IMG/VR virus record: IMGVR_UViG_3300027963_000035
Coordinates: 186,001-250,000 of that record
Length of the DNA stretch: 64,000 bases
Reading direction: 5' to 3' (one strand)
The notes beneath the pieces were generated by a model. The model had not been told where the DNA came from and made no database searches. It saw only the letters and a program-made list of their open reading frames with translations. Position numbers and translations under genes: made by a program. Positions 22,059 through 42,045 of the stretch are shown here, in pieces. Positions within the stretch are counted from its first letter, which is position 1. The number at the start of each line of letters is the position of its first letter.

Positions 22059-22721
22059 ATGAAATCAAATCATAATTTATGTCCTTCTTGTGGACGAGCT
22101 CTTAAAGGAACAAGAAGAAAGTTTTGCTCTACTGAATGCGTACTAAAATCAAGTAATTCAAAACATCAAAATTACAAAAATCAGCACAGACGGGGCGTTT
22201 CAAAAAAAATGCAATTAATGAAGATGAAGGGAATGTCGTGTAAGGTATGTGGATACAAAAAGAACTATGCAGCCATGGCCTTTCATCACAGAGATCCAAA
22301 GAAAAAATCACACGGTCTTGACTCTAGAGCATGTTCAAATATGTCTTGGAAGTCTTTAGTTCTGGAGGCGGAGAAGTGTGATTTGGTGTGCATGAATTGT
22401 CATATGGAAATTCATCATCCACAATTTGAGGCCGAAAATGCAAATAAAATAATGGATGATTTCGTTCAATTCAATCAAACCGAAGTAAATCAGCACCTTC
22501 TTAAACCCATGAATTGCGAGCGATGCGGCGTAGAATATCAACCCGATAAACACAAAAGAAAATTTTGTTCCGATAAATGTTATCGCTTAAACTCTAGAAG
22601 AGTAGAGCGGCCCTCCAAAGAACAACTTGAGAAAGACTTGTCTGAAATGAATTTTGTAAAGGTAGGCAAAAAATATGGTGTATCAGATAATGCAGTGAGA
22701 AAATGGCTTAAGAGCTATTAA
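22059..22721 (+). CDS. Free-standing HNH homing endonuclease with Zn fingers and C-terminal HTH
   Basis: CKVCGY...FHHRDP...CDLVCMNCHMEIH; extra CxxC pairs; YGVSDNAVRKW. Confidence 0.85.
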   Translation: MKSNHNLCPSCGRALKGTRRKFCSTECVLKSSNSKHQNYKNQHRRGVSKKMQLMKMKGMSCKVCGYKKNYAAMAFHHRDPKKKSHGLDSRACSNMSWKSLVLEAEKCDLVCMNCHMEIHHPQFEAENANKIMDDFVQFNQTEVNQHLLKPMNCERCGVEYQPDKHKRKFCSDKCYRLNSRRVERPSKEQLEKDLSEMNFVKVGKKYGVSDNAVRKWLKSY

Positions 22722-22723
22722 AA

Positions 22724-22762
22724 GACACGAGGCTGCTTGATATTGTCAAGCAGCCTCGTGTT
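22724..22762. terminator. Hairpin between HNH gene and tRNA (probable terminator)
   Basis: GACACGAGGCTGCTTGA/TCAAGCAGCCTCGTGTT. Confidence 0.65.
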
Positions 22763-22765
22763 ACG

Positions 22766-23029
22766 TCCGAAGGGTGGGATTCGAACCCACAGTCTACAAA
22801 TTCAAGTTTGTGTGATTTTCACCACTCCTTGGACTTTGTCTTCACCATATCTTACGATTTAGGTGGTCGCCGTTAAGTCTCTACACGTTCCCTTACGGGC
22901 TTCGCTCGGCATTGCCATATGCTCACGCATTTAGGTTTCACCGAATTTGACGACATCCCATACGAAGTTTCCAATCGTATGGCACGAAAATTCATGAGTT
23001 TGTTGCATTAACCGTTTTGCTACCTTCGG
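22766..23029 (-). tRNA. tRNA with CAU anticodon (probably Ile2, possibly elongator Met) containing a group I intron
   Basis: CCGAAGG/CCTTCGG-A acceptor, ACAAA-CTCAT^AA-TTTGT anticodon arm, GTGGG-TTCGAAT-CCCAC T-arm; 16 nt downstream of tilS. Confidence 0.88.
22803..22993 (-). ncRNA. Group I intron (IC3-like), 191 nt, between tRNA positions 36/37
   Basis: P AAATTCGGTGAAAC, Q GCAATGCCGAGC, R GTAGAGACT, S AAGACAAAGTCC; 5' exon ends in U, terminal G. Confidence 0.88.
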
Positions 23030-23045
23030 AAATTAACCAACTGTG

Positions 23046-23699
23046 CTAGTCTAGAATTACCGTCTTATTCTTCAAGTTTTTTTCAATTCTCCTTGAACAA
23101 TATTTTTCTAGACTTAACTTTTGTTTTTTCATTTCTGGAATGATTGTTTGACGAATCCAATTTCTTCTGCTTCCTTTGACAACCTTATTGGTTTCGTCCT
23201 CCACAGTATAGCAATTCCATTTATTCCTGTCAACGTACTCTTGAAAATCTTTTTTCTTACTTAATAGAAAAGGATGGATGATCTTGAATCCATCGAACTC
23301 GCTAATTAATTCAAAAGGATTGTGATTGGGTTGTCCACGAAAACAATTAATTAAATAGCTTTCCACATAATCATTGAGATGATGAGCAGTGATTACATAA
23401 CCTTCGTAATCCACAACCTCTTTATAAAAATTTAAGCGGGCCTCCCTGCAATCTTTTTCTGTTTTTAAATTTTGGCCCTTACCCACAATGCCCTTTAATC
23501 CTAATTTACCACAAAGTTCATGGAACTTATTTTCCATGGCATGGTTCTGTTCTCTTAGATTATGATTAAAGTGCAATGGAGTAATGTTGTATCCCTTGCT
23601 TCTCAACCAAAATAAAGAAGATACGCTATCGACACCCATGCTTACGGCAACATAGCAATGAGTTTCTTTTGAAACAATTTCTTTAATGATCTTGATCAA
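23046..23699 (-). CDS. tilS: tRNA(Ile)-lysidine synthetase (catalytic domain only)
   Basis: PP-loop AVSMGVDS, HFNHNLR, REARL, TAHHLNDYVE, EDETN, RNWIR. Confidence 0.88.
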   Translation of the reverse strand: MIKIIKEIVSKETHCYVAVSMGVDSVSSLFWLRSKGYNITPLHFNHNLREQNHAMENKFHELCGKLGLKGIVGKGQNLKTEKDCREARLNFYKEVVDYEGYVITAHHLNDYVESYLINCFRGQPNHNPFELISEFDGFKIIHPFLLSKKKDFQEYVDRNKWNCYTVEDETNKVVKGSRRNWIRQTIIPEMKKQKLSLEKYCSRRIEKNLKNKTVILD

Positions 23700-26601: not shown

Positions 26602-26683
26602 TGGTTGATGCAGGATTCGAACCTGCGAAGCTAATAGCATTTGATTTACAGTCAAACCCCTTTGACCACTCGGGAAATCAACC
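26602..26683 (-). tRNA. tRNA-Tyr(GUA)
   Basis: GGTTGAT/ATCAACC-A acceptor, TTTGA-CTGTAAA-TCAAA anticodon arm, long variable arm, GCAGG-TTCGAAT-CCTGC. Confidence 0.92.
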
Positions 26684-26969
26684 TATATTATTTAAAGTAG
26701 ACTTCAGTAGCAGCACCCAAAGCAATTGATGATCCTGCTACAACACCAAATGTAAGGAGACATTGCCAAACAATTTCTCCTGTCAATCCACCCCAAATAC
26801 CTGCAATTGCAATAACAGCAGAAGATAAAATCAAAAAGCAAAGGGTGGAACCAACGATCTTTTTTATTTTTAGATTGTTGTTGTTATTGACGATTTTTTT
26901 CATGTTTTCCTTTAGTTGAATAAAAATTTAAAACTCTACTATATATATAGTATAAAGAGTTTTAAATTT

Positions 26970-27428
26970 ATGAAATACACATACACACATGAAACTTTAA
27001 AAGAACTTGTTGAAAGTTCAACATCAGTGAGACAAGTTCTTTTTAAATTAAAATTAGTTGCTGCCGGTGGTAATTACGCCACAATAAAAGCATATATTAA
27101 GAAGTTTAATTTAGACACTTCTCACTTTAAGGGTCACGGATGGTCTAAAGGGTTTGTTCTACCACCAAAAAAACCAATTGAATCATATCTTGTTAAAGGA
27201 AGTAACACTCAAAGTTTCAAACTAAAAAAGAAGTTAATTAGAGAAAAAATCTTTGAACATAAATGCATGAATTGCAAGAATACTCATTGGCTTGGGAATT
27301 TAATTCCAATAGAACTTCACCATAAAGATGGAGATTCTTCAAACAATGAGCTTTCTAATTTAGAAATTCTTTGTTACAACTGCCACGGTTTGACACCAAA
27401 CTTTCGTGGTAAAAACAAGAAAAAATAA
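26970..27428 (+). CDS. Free-standing HNH homing endonuclease
   Basis: CMNC...IELHHKDGDSSNNELSNLEILCYNCH; lies between tRNA-Tyr and tRNA-Leu. Confidence 0.88.
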   Translation: MKYTYTHETLKELVESSTSVRQVLFKLKLVAAGGNYATIKAYIKKFNLDTSHFKGHGWSKGFVLPPKKPIESYLVKGSNTQSFKLKKKLIREKIFEHKCMNCKNTHWLGNLIPIELHHKDGDSSNNELSNLEILCYNCHGLTPNFRGKNKKK

Positions 27429-27429
27429 A

Positions 27430-27716
27430 TGCCAAAGGCGGGGGTCGAACCCGCACAGGATGTTATCCCGAGGGATTTTCTTACCACTATAGTTTTCACT
27501 ACCCTTGCGGTTTGTAGTCTGGACTTTACCTTCACCATAACTTCTCAGTTTTAGGTGCTGCCCGTCAAGTCTCTACACCTTCCTGATTTCTCAGGCTTGG
27601 CTCGGTATTAGCAGTTAAGCCTTCACCGAATTTGAGCAGTTCTGCTCTAAAAGTTTCCTTTTAGGCACTCAATTTAATATCAAGTCCCTTGCGTCTGCCT
27701 ATTTCGCCACTTTGGC
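27430..27716 (-). tRNA. tRNA-Leu(UAA) with group I intron
   Basis: GCCAAAG/CTTTGGC-A, AGGGA-CTT^AAAA-TCCCT, long variable arm, GCGGG-TTCGACC-CCCGC. Confidence 0.92.
27480..27681 (-). ncRNA. Group I intron (IC3-like), 202 nt, after U34
   Basis: P/Q/R/S core, P1 ACTT/GAGT with U-G pair, terminal G; same site as cyanobacterial/plastid trnL(UAA) introns. Confidence 0.9.
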
Positions 27717-27775
27717 TTTTTAAAACCAAACCCAAATAAATTTTCAAAGAACAACCAGCAATCGTCACTCCCTCC

Positions 27776-27795
27776 AACCGTACCGGAGGGAAACT
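27776..27795 (-). promoter_or_regulatory. Conserved promoter-like motif (9)
   Basis: aaccgtaccggagggaaact, about 60 nt upstream of tRNA-Leu. Confidence 0.72.
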
Positions 27796-27868
27796 TGGTT
27801 TTTCACTTTAACACACTTTTAAACTTTTTTCAAGTAGAATTTCTAATACTTTTCTGCATAACTATCAT

Positions 27869-29188
27869 TCATTTTACACCTTTAAGGTAATTTTTATATT
27901 CTTCTAAGAAAATCTTTTCTTCATTCTTTGGATTAGAATTAGAGTGGCCTTTTGCTTGAACAACTTTGTTATTTTTAATTTCAATTGTTACTAGTGGTTT
28001 TTGAATTTCAGAGTTTAACCTTAAAAACAAAATAGTAGAATTCTTATTAGCGATATCTTCGTCATAGCTTGCAACGCAATGATTTAGCTTTATTCCTTCT
28101 TGAATTAAATCCTCGTGTTTAACTGGGGCTATTACGCTATACCTTTCATTTTTATATTCATATTTTTTAAAAGTTTTGCAAACTTTAGAGAACCTATTTT
28201 TAAAAGTTCTACTTTTTAAGACCTCATAATTTTTGCTAGTTATATCATGAAGTGTTTTAAGATATCTTGGATACTTATCAAAATCATTTTTCATTTGAAC
28301 GTTCATTTTTGCATAATCATGAAGAATTGATAATGCATCTTCAATATCTTCAATTCCCTGATTAGGCAACCCCCTGCAAATATAATCTGTTAATTTAAAT
28401 TTGTCATAACCCATCTTTATTAAGATATTAAAATATTCATCGTGCATATCTGGAAACCGATTATAGTTGTCAATTGCATACTTTATCACATCTACATTTT
28501 TAACCTCGCACCACCGTTCCAGAGTTGCATAATCGACTAATCTCATATAATCAGCCGGAACACTACTATATTCAGCAACCATTGTATCTAATTTTTCAAT
28601 ATAGTAATCCAAGCTATACTTTTTAAAATCACTTATAGTTTTAATATTATAATCAAAATAGATTTGTGCGAATTCTAGATGGTGGAATTTTTCTTTATTT
28701 TTTTGTAAAAAGTCCCACTTTGCAAATTTTTCAAAATCCCCCATAATCACAGGATTATTTAAAATACTAAAAAGATCGCTCCTATCAGGTACATAGTAAT
28801 CTTCACGGCTGGTGATAATGAAGAATAACTGAATCCATTCTTCTTTGCACAATTTATAAATATCTTTATCTCTCGCCAATCCAGAAAGATTGCCAGATGC
28901 AAATTTTATACATGACTTAGGATTTTTAATAAGAGTATTTGTCTCTGCGTCATAGAACTTATTATCAATCAGAGAATATTTAACATTTGTTTTGTTGCTA
29001 AAATTAAAAATTAAACTTTTCTTGTCCTCAGACTCACTAACACTTTTCAAGTATTGATAGTGCTTAATTTTTGATTCTTTTTTCTTCTTTTCAGCTAAAT
29101 GTATTTGGTTTATAAGTTCTTTGGTTGTGAAACCATTAACTTGTATAGTTGCTGTTTTCTTGCCATTATTAATTTTGATTGTTCTCAT
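27869..29188 (-). CDS. PcfJ-like domain protein
   Basis: C-terminal LKTLHD...DLIQEGIKLNHCVASY...ILFLR...LVTIEI; start moved to ATG 29188 to exclude the array. Confidence 0.78.
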   Translation of the reverse strand: MRTIKINNGKKTATIQVNGFTTKELINQIHLAEKKKKESKIKHYQYLKSVSESEDKKSLIFNFSNKTNVKYSLIDNKFYDAETNTLIKNPKSCIKFASGNLSGLARDKDIYKLCKEEWIQLFFIITSREDYYVPDRSDLFSILNNPVIMGDFEKFAKWDFLQKNKEKFHHLEFAQIYFDYNIKTISDFKKYSLDYYIEKLDTMVAEYSSVPADYMRLVDYATLERWCEVKNVDVIKYAIDNYNRFPDMHDEYFNILIKMGYDKFKLTDYICRGLPNQGIEDIEDALSILHDYAKMNVQMKNDFDKYPRYLKTLHDITSKNYEVLKSRTFKNRFSKVCKTFKKYEYKNERYSVIAPVKHEDLIQEGIKLNHCVASYDEDIANKNSTILFLRLNSEIQKPLVTIEIKNNKVVQAKGHSNSNPKNEEKIFLEEYKNYLKGVK

Positions 29189-29215
29189 TTTACTTGTTAT
29201 GGACACCCTGTTCGT

Positions 29216-29890
29216 TATTAAAATCAGAGGGTTTTGGTTCACTCTCGCACATTGTTAAAATCGCACAGCTAGGTTCACTAAACCATCATGTTAAATCTTC
29301 TTATTTGGTTCACTCTCGCACATTGTTAAAATACCGGCACTAGGTTCACTCTTCACGCATGTAAAATCAGATTTTATGGTTCACTCGACAACTATGTTAA
29401 AATCGAAGGGCTAGGTTCACTCTTCATCTATGTTAAAATCAAGCAGGTTGGTTCACTCAACTACCTTGTTAAAATATCGAATGATGGTTCACTCACCAAA
29501 TTTGTTAAAATTCCCGACTGTGGTTCACTCCAGAGGTCTGTTTAAATCCGGACATATGGTTCACTCGAATGCGGTGTTAAAATCGCCGTTTGTGATTCAC
29601 TCACTATACATGTAAAATCTCTCACATTGGTTCACTTAACTACCTTGTTGAAATCGTCGGGCTTGGTTCGCTCCGGCAGTATGTAAAAATCCAGTCTGAT
29701 GACTCACTCAACGTTCATGTTAAAATCGTTAATAATGGTTCACTTCTCGTCCTTGTTAAAATCAAGCAGGTTGGTTCACTCCGGCAAAATGAAAAAATCT
29801 GGGCTTCTGGTTCACTCATGGACGCATGTTAAAATCAAGGAAACTGGTTCACTCTTGACTTTTGTTAAAATCTCAGCCACTGGTTCACTC
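29216..29890 (-). repeat. TIGR-like dual-repeat guide-RNA array (36-nt period, 19 units)
   Basis: + strand [TGGTTCACTC]-N8-[TGTTAAAATC]-N8; first box at 29235, 29271, 29306, 29342 ... 29845, 29881; spacers variable. Confidence 0.88.
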
Positions 29891-31831
29891 CAGTTAATTT
29901 TCAACTTGTTCAAAACTCTATACCCAGACTTTAACTTATTGATTATCATTTAGTAAAAGTGTGCATTATTATGCACTTTTTCAATTCTTTTTCAATTTCT
30001 TTAACACTCATTTTGAAATAATGGGATGGTATCTGTAAGTAATCTCCTACAATAAATTCAAAAAGCATTAATTTACCTTTTGAATTTTTTAGATAAATTT
30101 CTAGTGGTGAATCGTAACAACCACTATTGATTAATTCAACTGTCACTAGGGGCGTACCATCGGTTTCTAAATTACCCACGTTATCAACAATCATGTGATT
30201 AGGGGTAAAAGGTTTGTGCTTCCATTTTTCACGATTTCCATTTTCATCAACAACGTCAAAACATTCACATATAACTTTTTTTATTTGATCGATTTGCTTT
30301 TTGGAAGATTTAACTATAGGCTGTGGGTCGTACGCATCCTCTCCGAGTAAACTGAAGGCGGTGCATGAATCACACTCGCACATTTCGGTATAATAAATTT
30401 TATTTAATTTCATTTCTTTGTAACTTTTTCGTCCCTATAAATTTTTGTGACTAATAATAAGATTTAAAAATCACACGCCCCGTCCTCTACAGGATCCATG
30501 TATTCCAGCAAGGGAGTTATTCTATCCTCTGCCATTTCCAGTATTACATCTTCGTCAACGTCTTTTCCTATAACTTTCTTACTTACTATATGAAGATTGT
30601 ATATTTCGTAGAAACAATAACCTTCGCCGTTGTATTCATCGGTTTGTACCGTCAAATCCATTTTTATATCAACCTCGACAAACGAATCTAGGCCGATGAG
30701 AAATTGTAAGTGTATAATTTTGCCGCCCGAAACAAAACCATCTAACTTTCTTTGAATTTTTTGTGTTACGCAAGTGTTGAGAACATCCTTAAAATTTGAT
30801 TTCATAATTATCTTTTAGTCTCCTTGTTGGTCTTGTCGCTATTTCGTGGCTAGAAATCTTTTCCTGTAAATTTTTGCTCGTTCGGCGTCTTTGTTTTTGA
30901 GTCCAGTAGGTACAATTAGTCTACCGTGCCATCCTTCTGGAGCCTTTATATTGGCTTCTACGCACAATCTAAGGACTTTCGGTAGGAGATTACACTCCAA
31001 GCCCCGCAGTTCACCATAGGTGAAGGTAAGGAAAAGGGCTTGTTGCATGATTTTGTGGGCTTCGTGGATTGTTACATCTTTATTTGACAATCTACTTGAT
31101 AAGAGATGTTCTATGTTTCTATCGTATTCTTTTACAAACTCGTCGCACGAAAAGATTATTTTTGCTGCTTTTTTCCTAAAAGATGCGGGTCCGTTTTCAA
31201 AGACGTTAGTTGCCCATGCACGGAGTTTGTTTGCGAGTCTAATTGCTGTGTCCATGTTTCTTCTCAATAAACTGCACGTACCTAGACTTTAACTTATCAA
31301 ATAAAACTATAAGGTTTTAATGAATAAAAAGTTAAAACAACTCCAACATTATAAGCAGAACTTGGATCTGTTTTTATAACCTTAAAAACATTATGATCAA
31401 TTAATTTAAGAACATCTTTTGAGGAAAGACAACGCATACAATTTTTTCCATCAAAAATTCCAACATCATTCTGTTCGACTTTATCTATTTCTATTTGGCA
31501 GAGAAAGTATTCTTCTTCATCTTTAGACATATCAACTAAAAATTTTTCATTTATACTGTTTAGGACATCGCCTAAAGTGAAATCTTTAAAAAAATTTAAC
31601 TTTTTATTCATTGTTTACTTACCCGGACATTGACTTAAACAGTTTTTCAATAATCTGTTACTCTGAGCCACTATTATCTAAACTCTGAAAAAGTGCATCA
31701 ACATCTTCAATACTATATGTGTAGTTAAAATGACCATTATCTTTAGCGTGTTTCATATCTTCTACAAGATTTTCCAAAGCATCCAAGATAATTTCCATAT
31801 CATGCTTTTCAATATAGTAATTCATGTTTTT

Positions 31832-32755
31832 CTACTTCTTCAAATACTCATCAATATCCAAAAGATTTGGCTGAATGATATGATGGGTGTGTCCCAAATG
31901 AGCCATGACATAAGGCTTGGGGCAATCAATTCCTTCAACCTTGCACCAAAGTTCATGGACATTACTCAGGAACAACTTAACCACCCAACGCCTTGCCATA
32001 GCATCCACATGACCATCTGGCAGAATTCCACTCTTATACTTAGCGATAACTTCCTTGTTCTTGAAGTTCTTTGAATTCAAGACAGAATCAGCAAGTTCCT
32101 TGAATCCGCCTTCAAGGTTCTTTTTTACAAGAAACTCCTTCTGGGTCTTGTAAAGCTTACCATAGAAGCACTCCTCCTTACCAGAGAACTTCATGAAACT
32201 CTGCCCGACCTTCCAGCACAGGGTTTTAAGGCTGGCGTTCCAGGGACGCTTTTGACCCTTTTCCCACTTACTTGTGGGATCGAGACCAGCATAACGCCAA
32301 ATAGCACCAGCGGTCTTTGCCTTATTGATGTCAATATGAGCAACAAGACCAGCAGTAATCACAGGACCGATTCCGTAAACCTTATCCTTCAAAATCTTTG
32401 CAATCAAAAAACTATCAGTCCAGTGATCCATAGCCCGTTTGATTTGAGTTTCAAGAACTTCTGTTTGATCGTTCAAGAAACTAAAGAGTTCATGAGGCTC
32501 TTTATCCTTGCCAAAAGCGGTGATCTGATTGGTGCTTCGCTTACGATTCTCTTGAATCATATAATAGTAATCAACAATATACCTCACTTCATCCTTGGTG
32601 AGGGTCTTAATCTTATTAGTGAGATCTTTATTGAGCCTAGCAACAGTCCCAAGACTTGTCAGGCTATCTGGCATTAGGCTATCTGCAATCTTCTTGCTTG
32701 AAATGCCCTTGCCGCAAGTGGGACACTTCTTCTTTGTTACACTTTCCTTTGACAT
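31832..32755 (-). CDS. Nop/IS110 C-terminal-domain protein without nuclease domain (TasA-like)
   Basis: Coiled-coil region then VYGIGPVITAGLVAHID...AIWRYAGLDP...WNASLK...HVDAMARRWVVKLFL; no DEDD/RuvC or HNH domain seen. Confidence 0.8.
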   Translation of the reverse strand: MSKESVTKKKCPTCGKGISSKKIADSLMPDSLTSLGTVARLNKDLTNKIKTLTKDEVRYIVDYYYMIQENRKRSTNQITAFGKDKEPHELFSFLNDQTEVLETQIKRAMDHWTDSFLIAKILKDKVYGIGPVITAGLVAHIDINKAKTAGAIWRYAGLDPTSKWEKGQKRPWNASLKTLCWKVGQSFMKFSGKEECFYGKLYKTQKEFLVKKNLEGGFKELADSVLNSKNFKNKEVIAKYKSGILPDGHVDAMARRWVVKLFLSNVHELWCKVEGIDCPKPYVMAHLGHTHHIIQPNLLDIDEYLKK

Positions 32756-33186
32756 ATTATTTTATCTTTCTATGAAATTATGGGGATCACTACTTCTGCA
32801 AAACGTCCCAGCCCCAAGTATCTGTTCGTTCGGCTGGTGCAACCAAAATAACATCGCTATTGTACTTGTTGCCCTTATGGTCTTGTTCACCCTTGGCTAA
32901 AAGAACCATACAACAAATTACATTACCCGACTTGTTAAACCCATACAGGGGGATTCCGCCCTTGTCGATAGGCTCGTACCATCGTTTGCCGGGAGGCACG
33001 TTGAACGTATTGGTTGTAGTGGGCGTCAATACACGTTCAACATTTCCCTGCCAATTAAGACTCAAGCAGCCGTGACACTGCTCAAGAAGATGAACGTCAC
33101 CAACAACTTCCAAATTACCAATCATTACTTGCTTTTTAGTAACTGTTTTCATGTTTTGTTTCTTTTGTTTTATGGAGACTACTCTC

Positions 33187-33206
33187 AACCGTACCGGAAG
33201 GAAACT
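33187..33206 (-). promoter_or_regulatory. Conserved promoter-like motif (10), upstream of the TasA-like gene and array
   Basis: aaccgtaccggaaggaaact. Confidence 0.72.
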
Positions 33207-33517
33207 TGTTTGTTTTATTATTTGTCAGAATCAGTTAGTTCAATATCTGCCTCAACTGAGTCATCCACGGGGTCGATGCTATGAATATCATAATCACAGG
33301 GAAATCCACCGTGACCCTCCATAACCTCTTCCCACTCAAGTTCAATATCATCATCATTAATCATATCGAGATCAAAGTTATCTTTAATATCTTCTACGCT
33401 ATCTGCAATTACCACAATCGTGGCACGTTCCCTAACACTAGGGACTTCACGCTCAATAGTAATTTCAAATTTAGGCATATTAATTATTTAATGGGAGGTT
33501 TGGGAGGTTCGCTACCC

Positions 33518-34396
33518 TCAAACCGTACCGGAAGGAAACTCGAGTGTTTCAAAAACACTTTCAAGTTCTTCTGATAATCTTCCTTTGATTACTTCGACTG
33601 CATATTGATAAAGAAATTCTGGACTAGTCTTGATGACTTCTTCTGCTTCAATCCATCTTCCTTTAATTACATCTTTAGCGTAACCACAGGCATACTCTGG
33701 ACTAGTTTTTATGGTTTCTTCTGCGTCAACCCAGCGACCTTCGATTACGTCTCTAGCATAATAATAGGCATATCGTGGATCAGTTTTAATAATCCCTTCT
33801 GATTCGATCCATCTGCCTTTAATTATATCTTTGGCGTAAAGATACATATAGTGGATTAAAACCCTCTCAGCTTCAATCCATCTATCTTTTAGGACATCTT
33901 TGGTGTAATAGTAAACATATGCAGGACTAGTTTTAATAATTTTTTCTGCTTCAATCCAGCGATCTTTAATTATATCTCTAGCATAGAGATAGGCATAATA
34001 TGGGTCAGTCTTAATAATCTCTTCTGCTTCATTCCAACGATTTTTAATTACATCTCTGGAATAAAGATAAGCATACTGGGGATCACTCTTGATAATCTCT
34101 TCGCACTCAATCCACCGTCCCTTGATAACATCTTTGGCATAATGATGGATATATTCTGGACGGCTATTCTTTATGATTTCTTCAACTTCAATCCACCGGT
34201 CTTTAATTACATCCCTAGCATAGCAGTAAGCATAATATGGTTCTGTCTTAATAATTGAAAACAAAGCTGTCTTTTGAATATTGTTGGGCTTTTCCCCATT
34301 AATCATAGTTCCATTTTTAATGAAACAATCAACATCCTCATAAGTAACGTTTGAGATGAACTGGTGATATTTTTCTGAGTAACTAGTCATTTTCAC
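33518..34396 (-). CDS. Tandem 24-aa helical repeat protein
   Basis: About 9 copies of IIKTxPxYAYxYARDVIKxRWIEAE. Confidence 0.8.
   Translation of the reverse strand: MKMTSYSEKYHQFISNVTYEDVDCFIKNGTMINGEKPNNIQKTALFSIIKTEPYYAYCYARDVIKDRWIEVEEIIKNSRPEYIHHYAKDVIKGRWIECEEIIKSDPQYAYLYSRDVIKNRWNEAEEIIKTDPYYAYLYARDIIKDRWIEAEKIIKTSPAYVYYYTKDVLKDRWIEAERVLIHYMYLYAKDIIKGRWIESEGIIKTDPRYAYYYARDVIEGRWVDAEETIKTSPEYACGYAKDVIKGRWIEAEEVIKTSPEFLYQYAVEVIKGRLSEELESVFETLEFPSGTV
33521..33540 (-). promoter_or_regulatory. Conserved promoter-like motif (11)
   Basis: aaccgtaccggaaggaaact, forming the last codons of the repeat gene. Confidence 0.7.
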
Positions 34397-34456
34397 CTCA
34401 CAACTCTATTTCAGCTTCAACTTGATAGTCAGATATCATTTTGGTTCTGCTTTTGT

Positions 34457-34645
34457 TTATCCCGGTATTTCACTCTCTAATCTATACAGCATTTCAAACA
34501 AAGGATCAAAATTTCCTTCATTCACTAAATCAATAGGTTTTTTACCGTTAAAAGCTTTATTTGGGGTTTGCAACCAATCGTTTGCATATTCTTCCTTAAC
34601 AATAGAAGATAGCCTTTCTTTGAATTCAGTAAATTTTTCGGTCAT
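34457..34645 (-). CDS. Xre/MbcA/ParS-type antitoxin C-terminal domain protein
   Basis: ANDWLQTPNKAFNGKKPIDLV; start ATG 34645. Confidence 0.72.
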   Translation of the reverse strand: MTEKFTEFKERLSSIVKEEYANDWLQTPNKAFNGKKPIDLVNEGNFDPLFEMLYRLESEIPG

Positions 34646-34664
34646 TGTTTTTTTCTTTGGCCAG

Positions 34665-34764
34665 GGCGAATGGGTGGAATCGAACCACCACAAGGGCATT
34701 TGTTTGCCTACTCTGCTGTCGCAGTTCGGAACTTCCCTCACGCTACCACTACGCTACATTCACC
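34665..34764 (-). ncRNA. tRNA-like RNA with expanded or replaced anticodon domain
   Basis: 8-bp GGTGAATG/CATTCGCC stem, D-loop AGTGGTA, T-arm GGTGG-TTCGATT-CCACC; sigma70-like promoter TTTACA-16-TATACT 7 nt upstream. Confidence 0.65.
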
Positions 34765-35127
34765 ATGATGAGTATAATCAAAAATTTTATTTTGTAAAGA
34801 TCTTCACTTCCTATTATACCTTTTAGTCATGTCAATATTTTTATAACTATCTTTAAGAAGACCTTCAAATATATCAAGTGAACATTCGTAAATTAATGGC
34901 GAAAGAGATAAAATAAAAAGTACAACCATTAATATCGATGCAACTTCTACACCAAATATAAAAATATTAAAAAAATATACTGGAAAAAGTAAAATCATGA
35001 ATAACATAAAGAGTTTAGAAGATCTGTCTCTTCGACGCCATTTCATATTGCATCGAAAATTTTCGTTTTCTTCGATTAAACGGTCTAATTCAGGAACGTC
35101 ACTCATTTTTTGCTCCAAGCTCCATTA

Positions 35128-35240
35128 TTTGGCCGTTATTTTGGCCACTTTCCCGAGCGGGAAATTTTCTAGTATTTTGGCTTAAAATTACCATAAATGT
35201 ACCGAGCGGGAAAATTCACTTTGGCCGTTATTTTGGCCAC
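35128..35240. repeat. Intergenic direct and inverted repeat cluster
   Basis: tttggccgttattttggccac x2 (35128, 35220); ccgagcgggaaa x2 (35153, 35202). Confidence 0.7.
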
Positions 35241-36934
35241 ATCTATGAGGTTTTTAATGTTTTTCCCATTGTTCTCTCGTCCAATTGATATCGTATTTAT
35301 ATTTATGCTTCTTAGCTAGATCTAGGAAATCTTTTATACATACAAATAAATTATAGTGATCACTAGAGTTAACTTGACCCCATAGAGGCAAACCAAAGCA
35401 TTTTGAACTACAGATATCTTTTATTTCTTTTATTTTAAATATGTTACAAACAATATAAATCAATTCAAAATTGCTTTCGTAATAAAATTTTTCTAGGGCA
35501 CCGGTTTTTTTTATTTTGTTAAATTCTTTGAATCTTTTAGCATACTCTAACCTATTTTGCGGCAAAGAAGAGTCAGCAGAAATATTACAAACTCTTTTGC
35601 ACAAAACATGGTTTCTATACTCACTGTTTTTGGAAATTTCTTTCCAAGAATCTTCACCAAATAAAGAAGGTAGTTCGGATTCTTTGACTCCAAAATAAAA
35701 AACCAAAGGTAAATGATTTTTTATTTTAACCTGCTTTAATAGATCTACTGTCTCACTGAGTCTATGAACTTTATCGGCGCTTGGTTTTCTTTTTAAATTA
35801 AAACAAAACTTTGTAAAAAGATATGGGTCTACAACCCAAATCTCCTTCATTTTTGAATTTATGATTTTTCTAGCGGTAGAGGCGGTTATTCCATATTCTT
35901 CTTTAAAAGAACTGTAATTATTTTTTATTAAGTAGGCACGATGTACTTTTGATAAAACATCTTTTTCAACAAAAGAAAAGAGAGGATTTTTAGATTTAAA
36001 TTCTTCTTCAGTTAATTGCTTTTCATGCCAAGGCCGAGAAAGTGATTGAAGCACTAGTTTTGTGCTAAAGTAGAAAAAAGTATCCCATTTGCGAATAACT
36101 TTATTTTTATGAATAGCAACCACAGATTTACCTTCTGTGGTGATTTTGATTTTTTCATCCATGTTATTCCTCTAAAGTAATGTGTTTAGGCCTATTGTTT
36201 CACTTAATTCTTTTCCGTTGCCATCAACAAACTTACAGATTTTATATTTCATTAGTTACTATCCTTTCTCCAAAAAAGAAATTAAATACAATATTGAAAC
36301 GAATGTTGTTCCTTCAACTATAGGAAATAGTGCAAAATAAATGGGGTATTTATTATTAACAAACAAAGACATTATTCCACAAACTAAACAAACTACTGGA
36401 AAACTTAAAAACAAAAATGATACTATATGATTCGATATTTTTTCATTTTTTCGCCCAATGTTAAATCTTAATGATCTTCTTATTGTTTGCTCCATACAAA
36501 AACCCAAATTATATTCATCAAAACTATTGGAAGTGTAAATATTGATGCAAATAGTCCTGCAACTACGATAGATCCAAAACCATCAAAATCATTATGAACC
36601 TCGGGATTACATCCCTCTAATATGCAAAAAATTCCAAAAAACCAAGATATTAATAACGCAAGTTCCATTCCATACATAGGCATAATTGGAGGAAAATCAA
36701 CATTTGTTGGTTTTGTTAACAAGCAAAACAAACAAAACCCAATATATATTAACAAAAAACCCCATACAATTTTTTTCATTTTTTATCCAACTGTTCAGCA
36801 AACTCCCAAGGAACATGATACTTATTATATAAGTCTACTACTCTCTTTGGAATGTATCCTTCATCTTCGCCGTATGCTTTTATTATCTCATGTAACGCTT
36901 CAATAATTTCGTCTTTATTCATAATTAAAACTTT

Positions 36935-37534
36935 TTATTCAATCCAATTATTTTCAATAATTTCATAAATTAAATCTTTTTGCTTGTCAGTAAACTTCCA
37001 TCTTATATTAACATTTTTATCTGCCCAATCTTTGGGATTGCTACCTTTTTCTTTTGACATAGCCATCCAATCTGCACACATTTCTGCAACATCAATGTCT
37101 GGCATCTTTGTTGCATCTACTATTTCTTTGGGTGGCTTATCACGGTTTTCTCTGTTAATTAACCCTGTTTTTGTTGGGCCATGATATTCAGGATGATGCG
37201 AATTGGTTGTTATATGATGTAAAGTAGCCTCTGACATTTTATCTAAAATTTCTTGAGGCACTTTAAATTCTTTATTATCATCTTTGCACTTGTATTGCCA
37301 AGAAATGAAAAGATAAGGAGTATATTCTGGTTCTTCAAATTTACTATCATCATGAACCTTTTTTCGTTCTTTTAGCTCAGAAAACCTATTTGGATCATAC
37401 TCTGCAATTTTATTGCAAAATTTTCCTACTAAATCTATATGGTATTTTGTTCGTTTATCAAAATGATCTTTCATTTCCTGTGTAATCATCTGATTATTTT
37501 TATTTTTATCCAACCATTCGTTGAAATTTTTCAT
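36935..37534 (-). CDS. HD-like phage protein (DUF5662-like)
   Basis: HDDSKF, HHITTNSHHPEYH, EMCADW. Confidence 0.6.
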   Translation of the reverse strand: MKNFNEWLDKNKNNQMITQEMKDHFDKRTKYHIDLVGKFCNKIAEYDPNRFSELKERKKVHDDSKFEEPEYTPYLFISWQYKCKDDNKEFKVPQEILDKMSEATLHHITTNSHHPEYHGPTKTGLINRENRDKPPKEIVDATKMPDIDVAEMCADWMAMSKEKGSNPKDWADKNVNIRWKFTDKQKDLIYEIIENNWIE

Positions 37535-37721
37535 TTTTATTTCCTATTTCATTTATAAGTTATACGTTTATAGTCTGACATCAGAAACAACTTCATAGGT
37601 AGTATGACAAAGTTTCTTTGCTTCTGCAAGTTCTTTTACAATTTCCTTTGAGCGATTATGCCAATAGGTCACATTATTTTTTGCAACATCGGCATTTTCA
37701 TAACGAATAGCATGACAGTTT

Positions 37722-37847
37722 CTCCACAACCAGAAAAATAAAGGATCTTTTTGTTGAACAAAACTCCACAACCAGAAAAATAAAGGATCTTTTTGTTGAA
37801 CAAAACTCCACAACCAGAAAAATAAAGGATATTTTTGTTGAACAAAA
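37722..37847. repeat. 42-bp coding tandem repeat x3
   Basis: Encodes FVQQK(D/Y)PLFFWLW x3 in ORF 37568..38140. Confidence 0.85.
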
Positions 37848-38809
37848 AATCCACGAAATTCTCCATTGCTGTAGTACTGCTCGACAACTCTAAATTTGAT
37901 TTTTTTATAAACTTCTACAACCCTATTTTTAAAGGGTTTAAATATATATTCATTTTTTTGAGCTTCATCAAGAGTAATAGGATAGAAATGACAATCTTTA
38001 TACAGCCAAAAAAATAATGGATTTTGTTTTTGGATAAAATATCCAGTAGATCCAGAGGGATAAATTCTTTTAATAATTCTAGTGCGATTGAACATTTTAT
38101 TTACCTCTTGTAATATGTTGTTTAGTGGTTTAATTTTCATTTTTTTAATATCTCTTTTTTATAATATTCTAGGTATTCAATAGCCCAAATATCTTCTTGC
38201 TTCCACCTGTCGATGTCCGTTTCTTTAGACCAATTTTTATATTCATCTGAGTCGTAGTTTTTATTTTTTAATATATCAATAGCCTGTTCTATTGTTGAGT
38301 TCTTAGAAAATGCACTCATGATCTTACGTGCCGTTCCTCCCCAATGTTTTAAGTTGGGTGTGCTATCTATTCCAAGATGTTCTTCCGCATAGCATTTTGC
38401 ACAAGTTTGAGGCTCATAAACACAATCTCCACAATGACTACTTTGTAGTTCTTCTATAAAATATTTTATAGATTCTTCGTCGTATTTTGTTTCGATAAAT
38501 TTTTCAGAGATATCACGTAATTTATTTTGGATATTATCTAAATTAGTTTCTTTTTTTTCTCTTATATCAAATTCAATCCAAGAAACACTTTCTCCAATCA
38601 TGTCCCATTTGTATTTCCAAAACAATAACTGTTTTTCAGTATCGTCAAGAAATACTTTACTTGCTAATGGGTTTTCATTATATTCTATTTTCATTTTCTA
38701 ATTTCTCAAGCCTTTTGTAAATTTTTTTAAATCTAAAGGCAGTTGCCCAAGAATCTATGTAAAGGTAAGCAATTATCATTATATAAAAATATTTAAATGA
38801 TTCAATCAT

Positions 38810-39160
38810 TTAAATAAATAGGGAAAGATCAATTCCCTTGTCTCTTTCTAAATTATGAGCATAAGCAGTTAAAGTACCGTCTGGCTTTTTGTCATTAATT
38901 AAAATTCTTGAGCCTGTAGGAATTCCGCAAACAATTAGATCAAATTTAAGGTTGTGATATTGAAGAAATTTTTCTATTCTTTCTTTGTCTTCACAAGTTC
39001 GTGCAGTGGTAATAATTACAAAATCTTCTTCTTTTACTATTTCTTCAAAGAAAGATTTTGTAGTTGAAAGAATAAAGTCTTCTGAACTCATGTGGCTTTT
39101 TTGAGTCACAAGAGTGCCATCAAAATCTATGAACCATGTTTTAGGTTGATTTTTAGTCAT
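38810..39160 (-). CDS. HAD-family phosphatase-like protein
   Basis: FIDFDGTL, ITTAR, LINDK. Confidence 0.72.
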   Translation of the reverse strand: MTKNQPKTWFIDFDGTLVTQKSHMSSEDFILSTTKSFFEEIVKEEDFVIITTARTCEDKERIEKFLQYHNLKFDLIVCGIPTGSRILINDKKPDGTLTAYAHNLERDKGIDLSLFI

Positions 39161-40956
39161 TATAATTCCAACATTCTACTTTTTTAATTTGATTTGATTT
39201 ATCAAACCATTTATCTCCTTCAATGTATTTGTTTGCTTCTTCTACATTAGAAAGTTTAAGAATAACTCTATAAGAACGTAGTCCAATTTTTTCAAATGTA
39301 TCCAAATAACGCCAAAATAACCACCCCTTTTTCTTGACTTGATACCATTCTTTTCCGTTACCATCAACAAATTTACAAATTTTGTATTTAGTCACTTTTC
39401 TACCCAGGGTCTTGCGAGTAATAAGCCGGTGTTCGATCATCTTGCAGAAAATCGTATTGCGATGCAATTACAGCAAAATATATCCCTAATGAGCCGTTTT
39501 TTGATCTTCTTCCTTCACAACATCCATAAATATTTTTTTCTAAATCATTGTAAAAATTATACCTCAGTGATTGATCTACAAAATATTTCATTTCTTCTAT
39601 AATGTTTGATTTATGATGATCCATCTTACAAAATGGAATGTAAATATTTAATTTTTTTGCTCTTTCTAGCATTTCAGACTTAGAAATAACACACAAATTT
39701 TTTCCTTTGTATATTGTCTGGTGTTCTTTAGTTCTTAAATATGCACCGTATGAATTTTTAAAAACTAAAATTCCAGCCATTGTTGGCAACAAAGATTTAA
39801 TAAGACTTCTTCTGTTCATTTCTTTTCTCCTTGGTTGTTTTTTTCCATCTCAGAGTTTACTTCACCCTTCAGCATAACTAAATCCAATCTAATATTTTTT
39901 ACATCTTCACTTATTTTGTATGAAATAAAAGTCATTATGAATGCCAACATCATAATGATAATCGTGATAAATAAAATAATTGCTTTAAGTAATTTATCGT
40001 TTTCGTTCATTTCTTGTCTCCGTATATAAATTTCCACTCTGATAAGTCTGTATCAACACCAGCAGCATCCCTAATACCATAAATGGTCTTGGGATCATGG
40101 TCGTATTTATGATTACGAATTTCTTTGGTTATTCTGAAGTTCATAATAGGTTGTGTTCTTTAAGAGTTTGATATAAATTTTTTACTTCTTTTTCGTCCAG
40201 CCTTATTTCGCTGGGGTCAGTATTGTTATAACTAAATACTCTGACCAAGTAAGGTTTATTTTTCAAAAACTCATTATAATGAATCTCAACAATATCATAT
40301 TCAAGATTCAGAGTTCTTACTAGAGTTTGCATTTAAAACTCTTAGCGATATGCCGCTCATTGAACATTGTATATGTCAAATGGGCCAAAGAATCCTCTTT
40401 CTATGATTTGATTGACAAACAATTTAATATCCTCAATAGAAGGGTTTCCTGTTTCATTTTCAACTTCTATTGTTATTAGAGTTTTCATAATTTTTCTTAT
40501 ATTAAAACCTAATCACTTTATAATCATTACCAACTTTACAGTTTATACTTCCATGCAAACCTGGGAGGATGATATTAGCAATGATTAACTCTGCCCCAAT
40601 TACTTTATTCTTACTGTAGACTTCTTGGGCTATTTTAACATCTTCTAAAGAGGCAGGACGAGATCCTCTTTCATTAAAGTCTTTGATAACCTTAGTTCTA
40701 TTCTCATCATTAGAACTTGAGCAATCGTCTAAGATTTTTTCTTCTTCTTCTGAAAACTTTGGAGAAAGTCTTTCAATCCATTTATCATCTATCAAACAAA
40801 GGCATCGTGTCATTTTCCCTCCTTGGAAAAATGTTAGTGGGTGCTAATAGCATACCAGAAATTTTTGTTTCGTCAATAGAAAGTTACATCATGATTGAAT
40901 TTATTTATAAAATTATGGTTCAATGCATATATATAAATATATTAAAGGTTCAAGTC

Positions 40957-41523
40957 ATGAAAGTAAAAGATAAAATATTAGAATTAAGGGCATTGGGATA
41001 TTCATATAAAAAAATCCAAGATGAGATCAAGTGCTCAAAAGGAACAATATCGTATCATTGTGGTGAAGGTCAAAAAGAAAAATACGCCAAAAGACGTAAA
41101 TCAAACAGATCTAAACAGCATCCTTTGATTCGCAAGATTGAAAATTTTATTTATGATAAATACTACAAACCTGTTCCGAAGAATAGGCATATTCATACAT
41201 TGCACAAAAACCTGAAGATAAGGATAGAAGGATTCTCTAGAGTTAACAAGGAGTATGCTGGCATGGAATTTACAATTAAAGATTTTTTAGATAAGGTTGG
41301 AGATAATCCAACATGCTCATTAACTGGAAAACCAATTGATTTAATGAAACCTAGAACATATCAATTGGATCATATAATCCCAAGATCTAAGGGGGGAGAA
41401 AATACTCTAAATAACTGTCAGCTTGTTCTCAAGGAAGTCAATTTAGCAAAACATACTTTAAGCTCAGAAGAGTTTGTTAAATTATGCAGAGAAGTTGTTG
41501 ATTATCACGATAGAAAAAACTAA
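40957..41523 (+). CDS. Free-standing HNH endonuclease with N-terminal HTH
   Basis: YQLDHIIPRSKGGENTLNNCQLVLKEVNLAK; TATAAATA (T4 late-promoter-like) at 40932-40939. Confidence 0.85.
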   Translation: MKVKDKILELRALGYSYKKIQDEIKCSKGTISYHCGEGQKEKYAKRRKSNRSKQHPLIRKIENFIYDKYYKPVPKNRHIHTLHKNLKIRIEGFSRVNKEYAGMEFTIKDFLDKVGDNPTCSLTGKPIDLMKPRTYQLDHIIPRSKGGENTLNNCQLVLKEVNLAKHTLSSEEFVKLCREVVDYHDRKN

Positions 41524-41562
41524 TCAAAGTTTGTAGCTCTTTATATTCAAACCAGCTTGTAG

Positions 41563-41703
41563 CTCCGTGACTTGGATTTGAACCAAGAACCATTCGATTA
41601 ATCCACTGTTTGGGCATTGAACCCAACATAAATTGCCAGCTTTTTTGAGCTTCAATTCAGTGGCTTTTTACAGTCGAACACTCTACCGTTGAGTTATCAC
41701 GGA
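41563..41703 (-). tRNA. tRNA-Asn(GUU) with a 69-nt insert in the anticodon
   Basis: TCCGTGA/TCACGGA-G acceptor, intact D and T arms, TTCGA-CTG[insert]TTAA-TCGAA. Confidence 0.8.
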
Positions 41704-41768
41704 ATAATTAGCACAAAATATTAATAGTAAATACTTTGCACTTTTCTAAACAAAACAAAAAAACAAAA

Positions 41769-42045
41769 TGACCCAGCCAAGGATCGAACTTGGAACCTAC
41801 AGCTTAGCGGTACCACTATAGTTTTCACTACCATTACTGTTTGTGGTCTGGACTTTATCTTCACCATTGTCTTTCAACTTTAGGTGTCGCCTGTTAAGTC
41901 TCTACACCTTCCTAATTGCTTAGGCTTGGCTCGGTATTAGCAGTTAAGCCTTCACCGAATTTAAGCGATTCTACATTAAAGATTTCTCTCTAAGCACTCC
42001 TATTTCACGAAGGCTGTTGCTCTTATCCAATTGAGCTACTGGGCC
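41769..42045 (-). tRNA. tRNA-Arg(UCU) with group I intron
   Basis: GGCCCAG/CTGGGTC-A, ACAGC-CTT^CTAA-GCTGT, CCAAG-TTCGATC-CTTGG. Confidence 0.9.
41808..42009 (-). ncRNA. Group I intron (IC3-like), 202 nt, after U34
   Basis: Core nearly identical to the tRNA-Leu intron; IGS TAGGAG can pair with exon CUU (P1) and CUA (P10); terminal G. Confidence 0.9.

Follow-up and report, generated by a model that had tools for sequence, protein, structure and literature searches.

HNH genes beside interrupted tRNA genes of a freshwater jumbo phage: putative tRNA-specific homing endonucleases

Introduction

Collaborative homing is a process in which a free-standing endonuclease gene lies immediately downstream of a gene interrupted by an ORF-less group I intron. 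Known cases are cyanophage S-PM2 F-CphI with the psbA intron and the nrdA gene of Aeromonas phage Aeh1 (PMC2790892, PMC3984707, PMC6083498). In trans homing, a free-standing phage endonuclease drives preferential inheritance of neighbouring DNA. Specifically, T4 MobE nicks away from the intron insertion site yet mobilises the defunct nrdB intron (PMC2790892), and T4 SegB acts in the tRNA gene cluster (PMC2330249). I-SspI is encoded in the tRNA-fMet intron of Synechocystis (Bonocora and Shub 2001, cited in PMC3984707). Bacterial tRNA group I introns include the classical types Leu.3Ug, Ile2.5Ug, fMet.2Ug, and Arg.5Ug (bioRxiv 10.1101/2020.01.27.920355), while the tRNA genes of Lak megaphages carry "enigmatic" introns of unknown class (bioRxiv 10.1101/356790).

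The window analysed here is a 64,000-nt stretch of a freshwater jumbo phage (IMG/VR record IMGVR_UViG_3300027963_000035, positions 186,001 to 250,000). A first-pass annotation, made from the sequence alone, proposed that each interrupted tRNA locus is abutted by a convergent free-standing HNH gene. It attributed this to repeated collaborative homing at anticodon loops, possibly with cutting of intron-less host or competitor tRNA genes. The arrangement itself is confirmed, although "each" is overstated. The proposed interpretation is only partly supported.

Organization of the locus

The window contains the following features:
22059..22721 (+), HNH1, a free-standing HNH endonuclease of 220 aa with an N-terminal zinc ribbon, HNH core, C-terminal zinc ribbon, and helix-turn-helix
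22725..22761 (no strand), G+C-rich inverted repeat in the 43-nt spacer between HNH1 and tRNA-CAU, read directly from the sequence and probably a two-way terminator
22765..23029 (-), tRNA-Ile2(CAU) with a 191-nt group I intron (22803-22993) inserted after CAU (CUCAU/...G/AA, slashes marking splice sites)
23046..23699 (-), TilS-like lysidine synthetase catalytic domain, 17 nt upstream of tRNA-CAU
26602..26683 (-), uninterrupted tRNA-Tyr(GUA), about 290 nt from the HNH2 start codon
26970..27428 (+), HNH2, a free-standing HNH endonuclease of 152 aa whose stop codon lies 1 nt from the tRNA-Leu 3' end
27430..27716 (-), tRNA-Leu(UAA) with a 202-nt group I intron (27480-27681) at the classical CUU/...G/AAAA site
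34664..34763 (-), tRNA-Gly(UCC)-like gene with a 27-nt insert in the anticodon arm (38 nt by the Rfam alignment)
40957..41523 (+), HNH3, a free-standing HNH endonuclease of 188 aa with an N-terminal helix-turn-helix and a Cas9/IscB-type HNH domain
41562..41703 (-), tRNA-Asn(GUU) with a 69-nt insert (41601-41669) in the anticodon loop that is not a group I intron
41768..42046 (-), tRNA-Arg(UCU) with a 202-nt group I intron (41808-42009) at CUU/...G/CUAA

ARAGORN with its intron option finds five interrupted tRNA genes, all on the minus strand. One of these, the Gly-like gene (Rfam tRNA 38.2 bits), was missed by the first-pass annotation; its neighbouring ORFs match no HNH family. The uninterrupted tRNA-Tyr was found by ARAGORN and scores 59.3 bits against Rfam tRNA. 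Rfam Intron_gpI scores 59.2 bits for the CAU intron, 59.3 bits for Arg, and 50.8 bits for Leu, against a gathering score of 50. The splice sites read U/...G in all three, and at about 200 nt these introns are too short to hold an ORF. The Arg intron is 84% identical to the Leu intron. The Asn locus scores 53.8 bits as a tRNA with a 70-nt insertion and matches no other RNA family. Its insert has a fold z-score of -3.7 and is about 93% conserved across three alleles whose exons differ by compensatory changes. The Ile2 identity of tRNA-CAU is supported by the adjacent TilS-like gene, which matches TIGR02432 at 99.6 bits against a cut-off of 93.6 and Pfam ATP_bind_3 at 7e-26.

HNH1 matches PHROG HNH families at 3e-19 and HNH2 at 2e-37. 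HNH3 matches Pfam HNH_4 (30.4 bits) and HNH (27.2 bits), both above cut-off, PHROG at 2e-26, and solved Cas9 HNH domains at 7e-8. The nuclease subtypes differ: HNH3 is Cas9/IscB-like, whereas HNH1 and HNH2 are McrA/maturase-like. Catalytic and zinc-binding residues are conserved in all three proteins, including the aligned motif FHHxDP...CxNCHxExH of HNH1. All three genes are convergent with their tRNA neighbours and end 43, 1, and 38 nt from the 3' ends of tRNA-Ile2, tRNA-Leu, and tRNA-Asn, respectively. HNH2 also neighbours the uninterrupted tRNA-Tyr. A further HNH-like ORF (1253-2590) is not near any tRNA, and no other plus-strand ORF tested resembles a homing endonuclease. Positions within 50 nt of the six tRNA 3' ends make up about 0.5% of the window, and three independent placements there would be expected at roughly 1e-7 by a rough estimate.

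Association of each HNH family with one tRNA species

The HNH2 family is tied to tRNA(UAA), with members beside this tRNA or inside its intron in about 20 viral contigs and most of 80 bacterial loci. In about 19 viral contigs, HNH genes 51-62% identical to HNH2 occupy the same convergent position and overlap the 3' end of intron-bearing tRNA(UAA) by 1-4 nt. In a sample chosen by the HNH motif alone, members lie inside the P6 loop of the intron, beside intron-bearing tRNA-Leu, or 37-150 nt downstream of intron-less tRNA-Leu. In bacterial genomes, about 31 of 80 lie inside the tRNA-Leu(UAA) intron and about 42 of 80 lie 0-62 nt after an intron-less tRNA-Leu(UAA). On the tree, the in-intron state of HNH2 arises at least five times, interleaved with neighbours of intron-less tRNA-Leu. 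Introns at HNH2 loci are 84-89% identical to that of the window, whereas their exons are only 54-83% identical and include different tRNA(UAA) backbones; this is a signature of mobility.

Eight of the closest HNH1 relatives lie antisense inside tRNA(CAU) introns, and others lie 9-81 nt from intron-less tRNA(CAU). However, the introns that hold HNH1 relatives sit at position 33/34, whereas the CAU intron of the window sits after position 36. The HNH1 and HNH2 families occur in all three stages of the known pathway: beside an intron-less cognate tRNA, beside an intron-bearing one, and inside the intron. The HNH3 family is instead tied to intact tRNA-Asn and shows no link to group I introns. Relatives 61-62% identical to HNH3 end 3 nt from a convergent intact tRNA-Asn, and others flank tRNA-Asn within tRNA arrays.

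Group I introns are enriched next to HNH2-family genes, occurring in 12 of 130 tRNAs within 300 nt and in 2 of 341 further away (Fisher p = 7e-6). Of 90 intron loci with both flanks available, 30 have an HNH1/2/3-family ORF within 150 nt.

Gain and loss in close relatives

Co-occurrence of HNH genes and introns in related phages, which had been named beforehand as a check, differs between loci. Relatives L241, L243, and L245 carry an intron-less 75-nt tRNA(UAA) and no HNH2, between flanks that are 89% and 95% identical to the window. This tRNA differs from that of the window along its whole length, which fits wholesale cassette replacement as well as it fits homing into a cut tRNA. One contig lacks exactly the HNH1 ORF, skipping 22084-22706, but keeps the neighbouring tRNA and its intron. 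Only the C-terminal 43 aa of HNH3 remain in relative L039, and HNH3 is absent in L241; these alleles keep the Arg intron and the Asn insert. HNH presence therefore does not track the intron at two of the three loci in close relatives.

Interpretation

The three HNH genes are very likely selfish, free-standing homing endonuclease genes that travel with tRNA introns, each belonging to a family specialised on one tRNA species: HNH1 on tRNA(CAU), HNH2 on tRNA(UAA), and HNH3 on tRNA-Asn(GUU). In the inferred mechanism, held with moderate confidence, the enzyme would nick or cut in or next to the cognate tRNA gene during co-infection with a relative that lacks the element. Repair would then copy the donor segment, which holds the endonuclease gene, the tRNA, and whatever interrupts the tRNA. 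The ORF-less introns lie only about 40-50 bp of 3' exon away from the endonuclease gene and would thus be carried along. Where the recognition site spans the anticodon loop, the interruption would also protect the donor copy. The analysis itself establishes the anatomy, the family-to-tRNA specificity, the gain-and-loss polymorphism, and the greater conservation of introns than of their exons, while cleavage, the position of the target, and protection by the interruption are inferences. Collaborative, intron-linked homing is well supported for HNH2 and plausible for HNH1. HNH3 is a tRNA-Asn-linked endonuclease whose homing appears intron-independent; here the 69-nt insert may play the interrupting role, and the nearby Arg intron, which has no cognate HNH, is most likely a passenger. 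Cutting of host tRNA genes remains speculation, although it is made more plausible by the hundreds of HNH2 relatives found at chromosomal tRNA-Leu(UAA) genes of bacteria.

A possible, less favoured alternative is trans homing or SegB-like homing without dependence on introns, in which the enzymes cut near their own insertion site, at the tRNA 3' end or in the flanking spacer of relatives that lack the gene. In this view, the introns and the insert are passengers in the co-conversion tract that neither define nor protect the target. Many family members lie directly after uninterrupted cognate tRNAs, in the same place relative to the tRNA 3' end. Many members of all three families lie beside uninterrupted cognate tRNAs, so an interruption is not required for self-immunity and the target may lie at the 3' end or in the flank instead of the anticodon loop. 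The alleles that keep an intron without the endonuclease gene, the lack of a link between HNH3 and group I introns, and the precedents of MobE and SegB also favour this view. However, HNH1 and HNH2 family members are repeatedly found inside introns, which is the position of classical endonucleases that target the intron insertion site, and the intron and HNH2 are gained and lost together at the Leu locus.

Independent accumulation of introns and nucleases in phage tRNA islands, as permissive hotspots with no functional link, is unlikely. HNH genes are common in phage tRNA arrays beside all sorts of tRNAs, and the same intron family also occurs in capsid and polymerase genes. Yet each HNH family keeps to one tRNA species across phages and bacteria, introns are enriched next to the HNH genes within the same arrays, the HNH2 junction with the tRNA 3' end is conserved to within 1-4 nt, and some family members lie inside the introns. 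It is more doubtful still that the HNH proteins serve the phage, either as maturase-like splicing helpers for the neighbouring intron or as nucleases against host or competitor DNA. Tight linkage to interrupted tRNAs and a weak resemblance of the HNH domains to the endonuclease domain of group II intron maturases are consistent with such roles. However, the gain-and-loss polymorphism in otherwise near-identical phages shows that the genes are dispensable, relatives lie beside intron-less tRNAs, and no maturase activity is known for HNH proteins of group I introns.

Comparison with known systems

As in the collaborative homing of F-CphI and of Aeh1 nrdA, a free-standing endonuclease gene lies immediately downstream of a gene interrupted by an ORF-less group I intron, the endonuclease gene and the intron lie within co-conversion distance, and the same enzyme family is also found inside introns, as the proposed route to mobile introns predicts. 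Here, however, the interrupted genes are tRNAs and not protein-coding genes, and the arrangement occurs three times in one genome with three HNH subtypes. The endonuclease genes are convergent with or antisense to the tRNA, many relatives lie beside uninterrupted targets, and cleavage at the intron insertion site, which defines collaborative homing, is at most inferred. The position of the endonuclease genes in or beside a tRNA cluster is shared with SegB, but SegB is a GIY-YIG enzyme and T4 tRNA genes have no introns. In the present case, each family keeps to one tRNA species, and family members also occur inside tRNA introns.

HNH1 relatives sit in introns at the same U33/C34 position as the I-SspI intron (site naming follows bioRxiv 10.1101/2020.01.27.920355). 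I-SspI is not known to be an HNH enzyme and is encoded in sense inside the intron of a bacterial chromosome, whereas HNH1 is an HNH protein that is free-standing here, its family being antisense where it lies inside an intron. Among the classical bacterial tRNA introns, the Leu intron occupies the classical CUU/AAAA site and the CAU intron the Azoarcus-type site after CAU, whereas the Arg(UCU) intron sits at position 3 and not at the classical position 5. These copies are in a phage; a 2014 review stated that all phage introns then known lay in protein-coding genes (PMC3984707).

The Lak megaphage introns are likewise short inserts of unknown class in the anticodon loops of huge-phage tRNAs, with sequences conserved across genomes. 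One was predicted to contain a tRNA-like fold, which resembles in form the T-arm-like hairpin in the 69-nt Asn insert. In the present phage, the insert sits next to an endonuclease of a family linked to tRNA-Asn.

Interrupted tRNA genes and adjacent HNH genes
The 251-kb freshwater phage genome IMG/VR contig 3300027963_000035 (window coordinate + 180000 = contig coordinate) encodes RIIA- and RIIB-like proteins and a ligase. It has no close match among deposited phages, as a megablast search with both regions returned nothing, and it is known only from freshwater metagenomes; the DNA runs that contain it are all freshwater or lake metagenomes. ARAGORN without its intron option detects only tRNA-Tyr and a fragment, whereas with the intron option it identifies five interrupted tRNA genes.

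22765-23029, minus strand: tRNA-CAU with a 191-nt intron (22803-22993)
27430-27716, minus strand: tRNA-Leu(UAA) with a 202-nt intron (27480-27681)
34664-34763, minus strand: tRNA-Gly(UCC)-like gene with a 27-nt insert in the anticodon arm (38 nt by the Rfam alignment; Rfam tRNA 38.2 bits)
41562-41703, minus strand: tRNA-Asn(GUU) with a 69-nt insert (41601-41669)
41768-42046, minus strand: tRNA-Arg(UCU) with a 202-nt intron (41808-42009)

The CAU, Arg and Leu genes contain group I intron cores that match the Rfam RF00028 covariance model at 59.2, 59.3 and 50.8 bits, respectively, against a gathering score of 50. In each, a U precedes the 5′ splice site and a G ends the intron (CUCAU/..G/AA for CAU, CUU/..G/AAAA for Leu, and CUU/..G/CUAA for Arg), and the joined exons are called as tRNAs. 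Splicing is inferred from sequence alone, as the only RNA runs contained 0.04 of the sampled words and therefore almost none of the region. The Asn and Gly-like inserts do not match the group I model, and the Asn gene scores 53.8 bits as a tRNA with a 70-nt insertion that matches no RNA family. The Arg and Leu introns are 84% identical over 189 nt, which suggests that one intron was copied from one tRNA species into another within the genome or lineage.

Three plus-strand ORFs, HNH1 (beside tRNA-CAU), HNH2 (beside tRNA-Leu) and HNH3 (beside tRNA-Asn), encode HNH endonucleases of different subtypes and end 43, 1 and 38 nt from the tRNA 3′ ends. All three match PHROG HNH families. In Pfam, HNH3 is above the cut-off, HNH2 is below it (18.3 against 24.8 bits), and HNH1 has no hit. 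The catalytic His and Asn residues and the zinc-binding cysteines are invariant or nearly so in the three family alignments, and all are present in the window proteins. The ORF-less introns at the CAU and Leu loci are separated from HNH1 and HNH2 by 38-50 nt of 3′ exon plus 1-43 nt of spacer, and the Arg intron lies about 285 nt from HNH3, which places all three within co-conversion distance.

The first-pass annotation, which described a convergent free-standing HNH gene abutting each interrupted tRNA locus, is correct in its coordinates and description, with three qualifications. The Gly-like interrupted tRNA has no endonuclease gene nearby, and no variant alleles of it were found in relatives; the uninterrupted tRNA-Tyr is also a neighbor of HNH2; and a fourth HNH-like ORF is not near any tRNA. 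This last ORF encodes a 445-aa protein that matches a PHROG family annotated as HNH endonuclease (4e-77), lies next to an ATPase gene, and is probably part of a different kind of system. Additional features of the window are as follows.

1253-2590, minus strand: the fourth HNH-like ORF
2667-3725, minus strand: the neighboring ATPase gene
23046-23699, minus strand: TilS-like lysidine synthetase catalytic domain, 17 nt upstream of tRNA-CAU
27869-29242, minus strand: PcfJ-like protein, just upstream of tRNA-Leu and missing from the 323-kb relative of the phage
31832-32755, minus strand: IS110-family-like transposase ORF (PHROG transposase at 2.5e-36), between the tRNA clusters
52730-54055, minus strand: second PcfJ-like protein

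HNH2 relatives and tRNA(UAA)
A search with a pattern taken from the intron core recovered at least 120 viral loci, of which 87 are intron-bearing tRNAs, mostly Leu(UAA). Among loci where no tRNA was called, the same group I intron core family also interrupts major head protein and DNA polymerase genes in viral contigs (loci within L045-L158, and phage record MH598807.1 at 19653-19807), and about 8 flanking ORFs match major head protein families. Comparison of all ORFs of the recovered loci with the three HNH proteins identified about 19 HNH2 homologs, 51-62% identical, in exactly the window's arrangement: convergent and overlapping the tRNA 3′ end by 1-4 nt. Other homologs lie inside longer introns. 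All 19 tRNAs are tRNA(UAA) once two ‘Phe’ calls are re-read. Many ARAGORN calls with long introns pair halves of neighboring tRNAs, and these were discarded unless nhmmer confirmed an intron core, while the ‘Phe(GAA)’, ‘Val(AAC)’ and some ‘Leu(UAA)’ calls were re-read as tRNA(UAA) or tRNA(CAU) using the U/G splice-site rule.

A second viral sample, chosen by the HNH2 motif alone, sits almost entirely in tRNA arrays. Its members lie inside the P6 loop of the intron, where nhmmer finds the core split in two, beside intron-bearing tRNA-Leu, or 37-150 nt downstream of intron-less tRNA-Leu. In this sample, introns are found in 12 of 130 tRNAs within 300 nt of the HNH gene and in 2 of 341 further away (p = 7e-6). 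One phage tRNA array (locus L011) contains a ROOL RNA (4258-4821; Rfam RF03087, 309 bits) next to an HNH2 homolog. The family is abundant in bacterial genomes of many phyla, with at least 577 hits. Of the 80 loci kept, about 31 lie inside the tRNA-Leu(UAA) intron, about 42 lie directly after an intron-less tRNA-Leu(UAA), and two Bacteroidota loci repeat the window's convergent arrangement. On a weakly resolved tree, the window protein falls in a clade of 11 convergent copies (SH-aLRT support 85), and the in-intron state arises at least five times among neighbors of intron-less tRNA-Leu. Locus searches with single proteins recovered few relatives and initially suggested that HNH relatives lie only beside intron-less tRNAs; this was an artifact of low sensitivity and was corrected by the intron-pattern and alignment-based scans.

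HNH1 and HNH3 relatives
In a metagenome sample chosen by the HNH1 motif, seven of the closest relatives (40-50% identity), plus one viral locus, lie antisense inside introns of tRNA(CAU) inserted at U33/C34. Others lie 9-81 nt from intron-less tRNA(CAU), and 18-19 of 80 loci have an intron core within about 300 nt. The window's tRNA-CAU instead carries its intron after position 36, which is the Azoarcus Ile2 site. The TilS-like domain directly upstream is above NCBI's cut-off (TIGR02432), and the gene is therefore tRNA-Ile2. The phage appears to bring both tRNA-Ile2 and the enzyme that modifies it.

Full-length HNH3 relatives lie in phage tRNA arrays. Two relatives, 61-62% identical, end 3 nt from a convergent intact tRNA-Asn(GUU), while others have tRNA-Asn just upstream or downstream. 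No group I intron was found in these loci, and a search of bacterial genomes for the HNH3 family returned no hit. This family is linked to tRNA-Asn and not to introns.

Gain and loss in close relatives
At the Leu locus, contigs L241, L243 and L245 from close relatives of the phage carry a 75-nt intron-less tRNA(UAA) and no HNH2, between flanks that are 89% and 95% identical to the window. A contig in DNA run X5 likewise skips 26914-27721. The intron and HNH2 are thus gained or lost together at this locus. The two tRNA(UAA) genes differ along their whole length but share the motif GACTTAAAATC, found in the intron-less L241 allele and in the window's spliced anticodon loop, which is the only indirect hint of cleavage at the intron insertion site and protection of the donor by the intron. 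At the CAU locus, a contig in DNA run X6 skips 22084-22706, which is essentially the HNH1 ORF, yet retains the tRNA and its intron. At the Asn/Arg locus, the 323-kb relative (L039) keeps the Asn insert and an Arg intron almost identical to the window's, but only the last 43 codons of HNH3 remain, and homology with the window ends inside that gene. L241 keeps both interruptions and lacks HNH3 entirely. In L241 (1-4300), the Arg/Asn tRNA cluster lies about 2.5 kb from the Leu/Tyr cluster, about 12.5 kb of the window (roughly 27845-40328) is absent, and the tRNA and endonuclease loci sit at the edges of the shared segments. All three HNH genes are therefore discrete, dispensable insertions, which is the hallmark of free-standing homing endonuclease genes, although only HNH2 co-varies with its intron.

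Inferred mobility of the interruptions and the tRNA-Asn insert
Among loci with a convergent HNH2, the introns are 84-89% identical to the window's, whereas the exons are only 54-83% identical and include both long-arm and short-arm tRNA(UAA) backbones. The three tRNA-Asn alleles (inserts at window 41601-41669, L039 11743-11807 and L241 1231-1297) differ by compensatory changes in all four stems, so the tRNA is under selection to fold, yet they share an insert that is about 93% conserved. Both patterns are those of elements that move between alleles.

The Asn insert is predicted to fold into a three-way junction with a T-arm-like hairpin (UUGGG-UUCAAUG-CCCAA). By inspection, the predicted fold contains a 7-nt/2-nt internal loop and lacks the two 3-nt bulges separated by a 4-bp helix that define an archaeal or eukaryal protein-spliced (bulge-helix-bulge) intron, and this identity was rejected on the basis of that prediction. 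ARAGORN in mitochondrial mode calls the insert as a nested tRNA only at a relaxed threshold, which is not significant, and a BLAST search of all retrieved loci found the insert only in this phage lineage. Short inserts of 42-66 nt in the anticodon loops of tRNAs from unrelated phages (L223 4167-4553, L217 4063-4309, L157 1163-1296, L044 4520-4648, L214 90-236 and L154 4345-4478) share a hairpin followed by a YUAACAGCAA-like motif, and three consecutive tRNAs in L223 carry one. Rfam confirms these tRNAs but has no family for the inserts, which may represent a distinct class of small phage tRNA intron.

It is possible, although doubtful on present evidence, that the Asn insert, perhaps together with the short insert in the Gly-like tRNA and similar hairpin-bearing inserts in other phage tRNAs, belongs to a new class of small mobile tRNA intron that is not group I. 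The insert is more conserved than the three different tRNA-Asn exon sets it interrupts; those exon sets keep their cloverleaf, so the tRNA is under selection to work and the insert must be removed; and it sits beside an endonuclease whose family elsewhere abuts intact tRNA-Asn. In this view, the insert would spread with, and shield against, a tRNA-Asn-specific HNH endonuclease, and might be removed, for example, by tRNA-processing nucleases acting on its tRNA-like fold followed by RNA ligation. The insert is flagged as functional but unexplained.

Mechanism and significance
The first-pass annotation proposed repeated collaborative homing, and this interpretation is partly supported: strongly for HNH2 and plausibly for HNH1, while HNH3 is intron-independent. 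The best reading is homing driven by tRNA-specific HNH enzymes, with the interruptions co-converted and possibly protective. The gene arrangement, the association of each family with its own tRNA, and the gain and loss of the HNH genes are established here by sequence comparison, whereas site-specific cleavage, its position, protection by the interruption, and self-splicing are inferred. Two observations argue against a strict collaborative model in which the enzyme cuts at the intron insertion site: many family members lie beside uninterrupted cognate tRNAs, and alleles exist that keep the intron but lack the endonuclease gene. Both fit equally well with trans homing from a cut at the tRNA 3′ end, as known for T4 MobE and SegB (PMC2790892, PMC2330249).

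The tRNA-Leu(UAA) intron is the textbook ancient bacterial and chloroplast intron and has long been regarded as lacking any means of its own mobility, yet its distribution is patchy. An HNH family found beside this tRNA gene, and inside its intron, across phages and many bacterial phyla offers a concrete, testable route of spread, with phages as possible carriers. The three endonuclease families, which appear each to read one tRNA species, are also a source of new enzymes.

Comparison with known systems
Collaborative and trans homing are established for protein-coding genes of phages, whereas the interrupted genes here encode tRNAs. Literature searches found no description of HNH families tied to particular tRNA species and their introns, a claim of novelty that is provisional given incomplete literature coverage. 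A 2020 survey of bacterial tRNA group I introns noted only that introns longer than about 400 bp might contain genes (bioRxiv 10.1101/2020.01.27.920355), and an endonuclease specific for the tRNA-fMet anticodon region is known from a cyanobacterial intron (cited in PMC3984707). A 2014 review stated that all phage introns then known lay in protein-coding genes, with none recorded in phage tRNA genes (PMC3984707). Lak megaphage tRNAs were later reported to carry ‘enigmatic’ introns (bioRxiv 10.1101/356790), and in the present phage, the tRNA genes carry stacked selfish elements.
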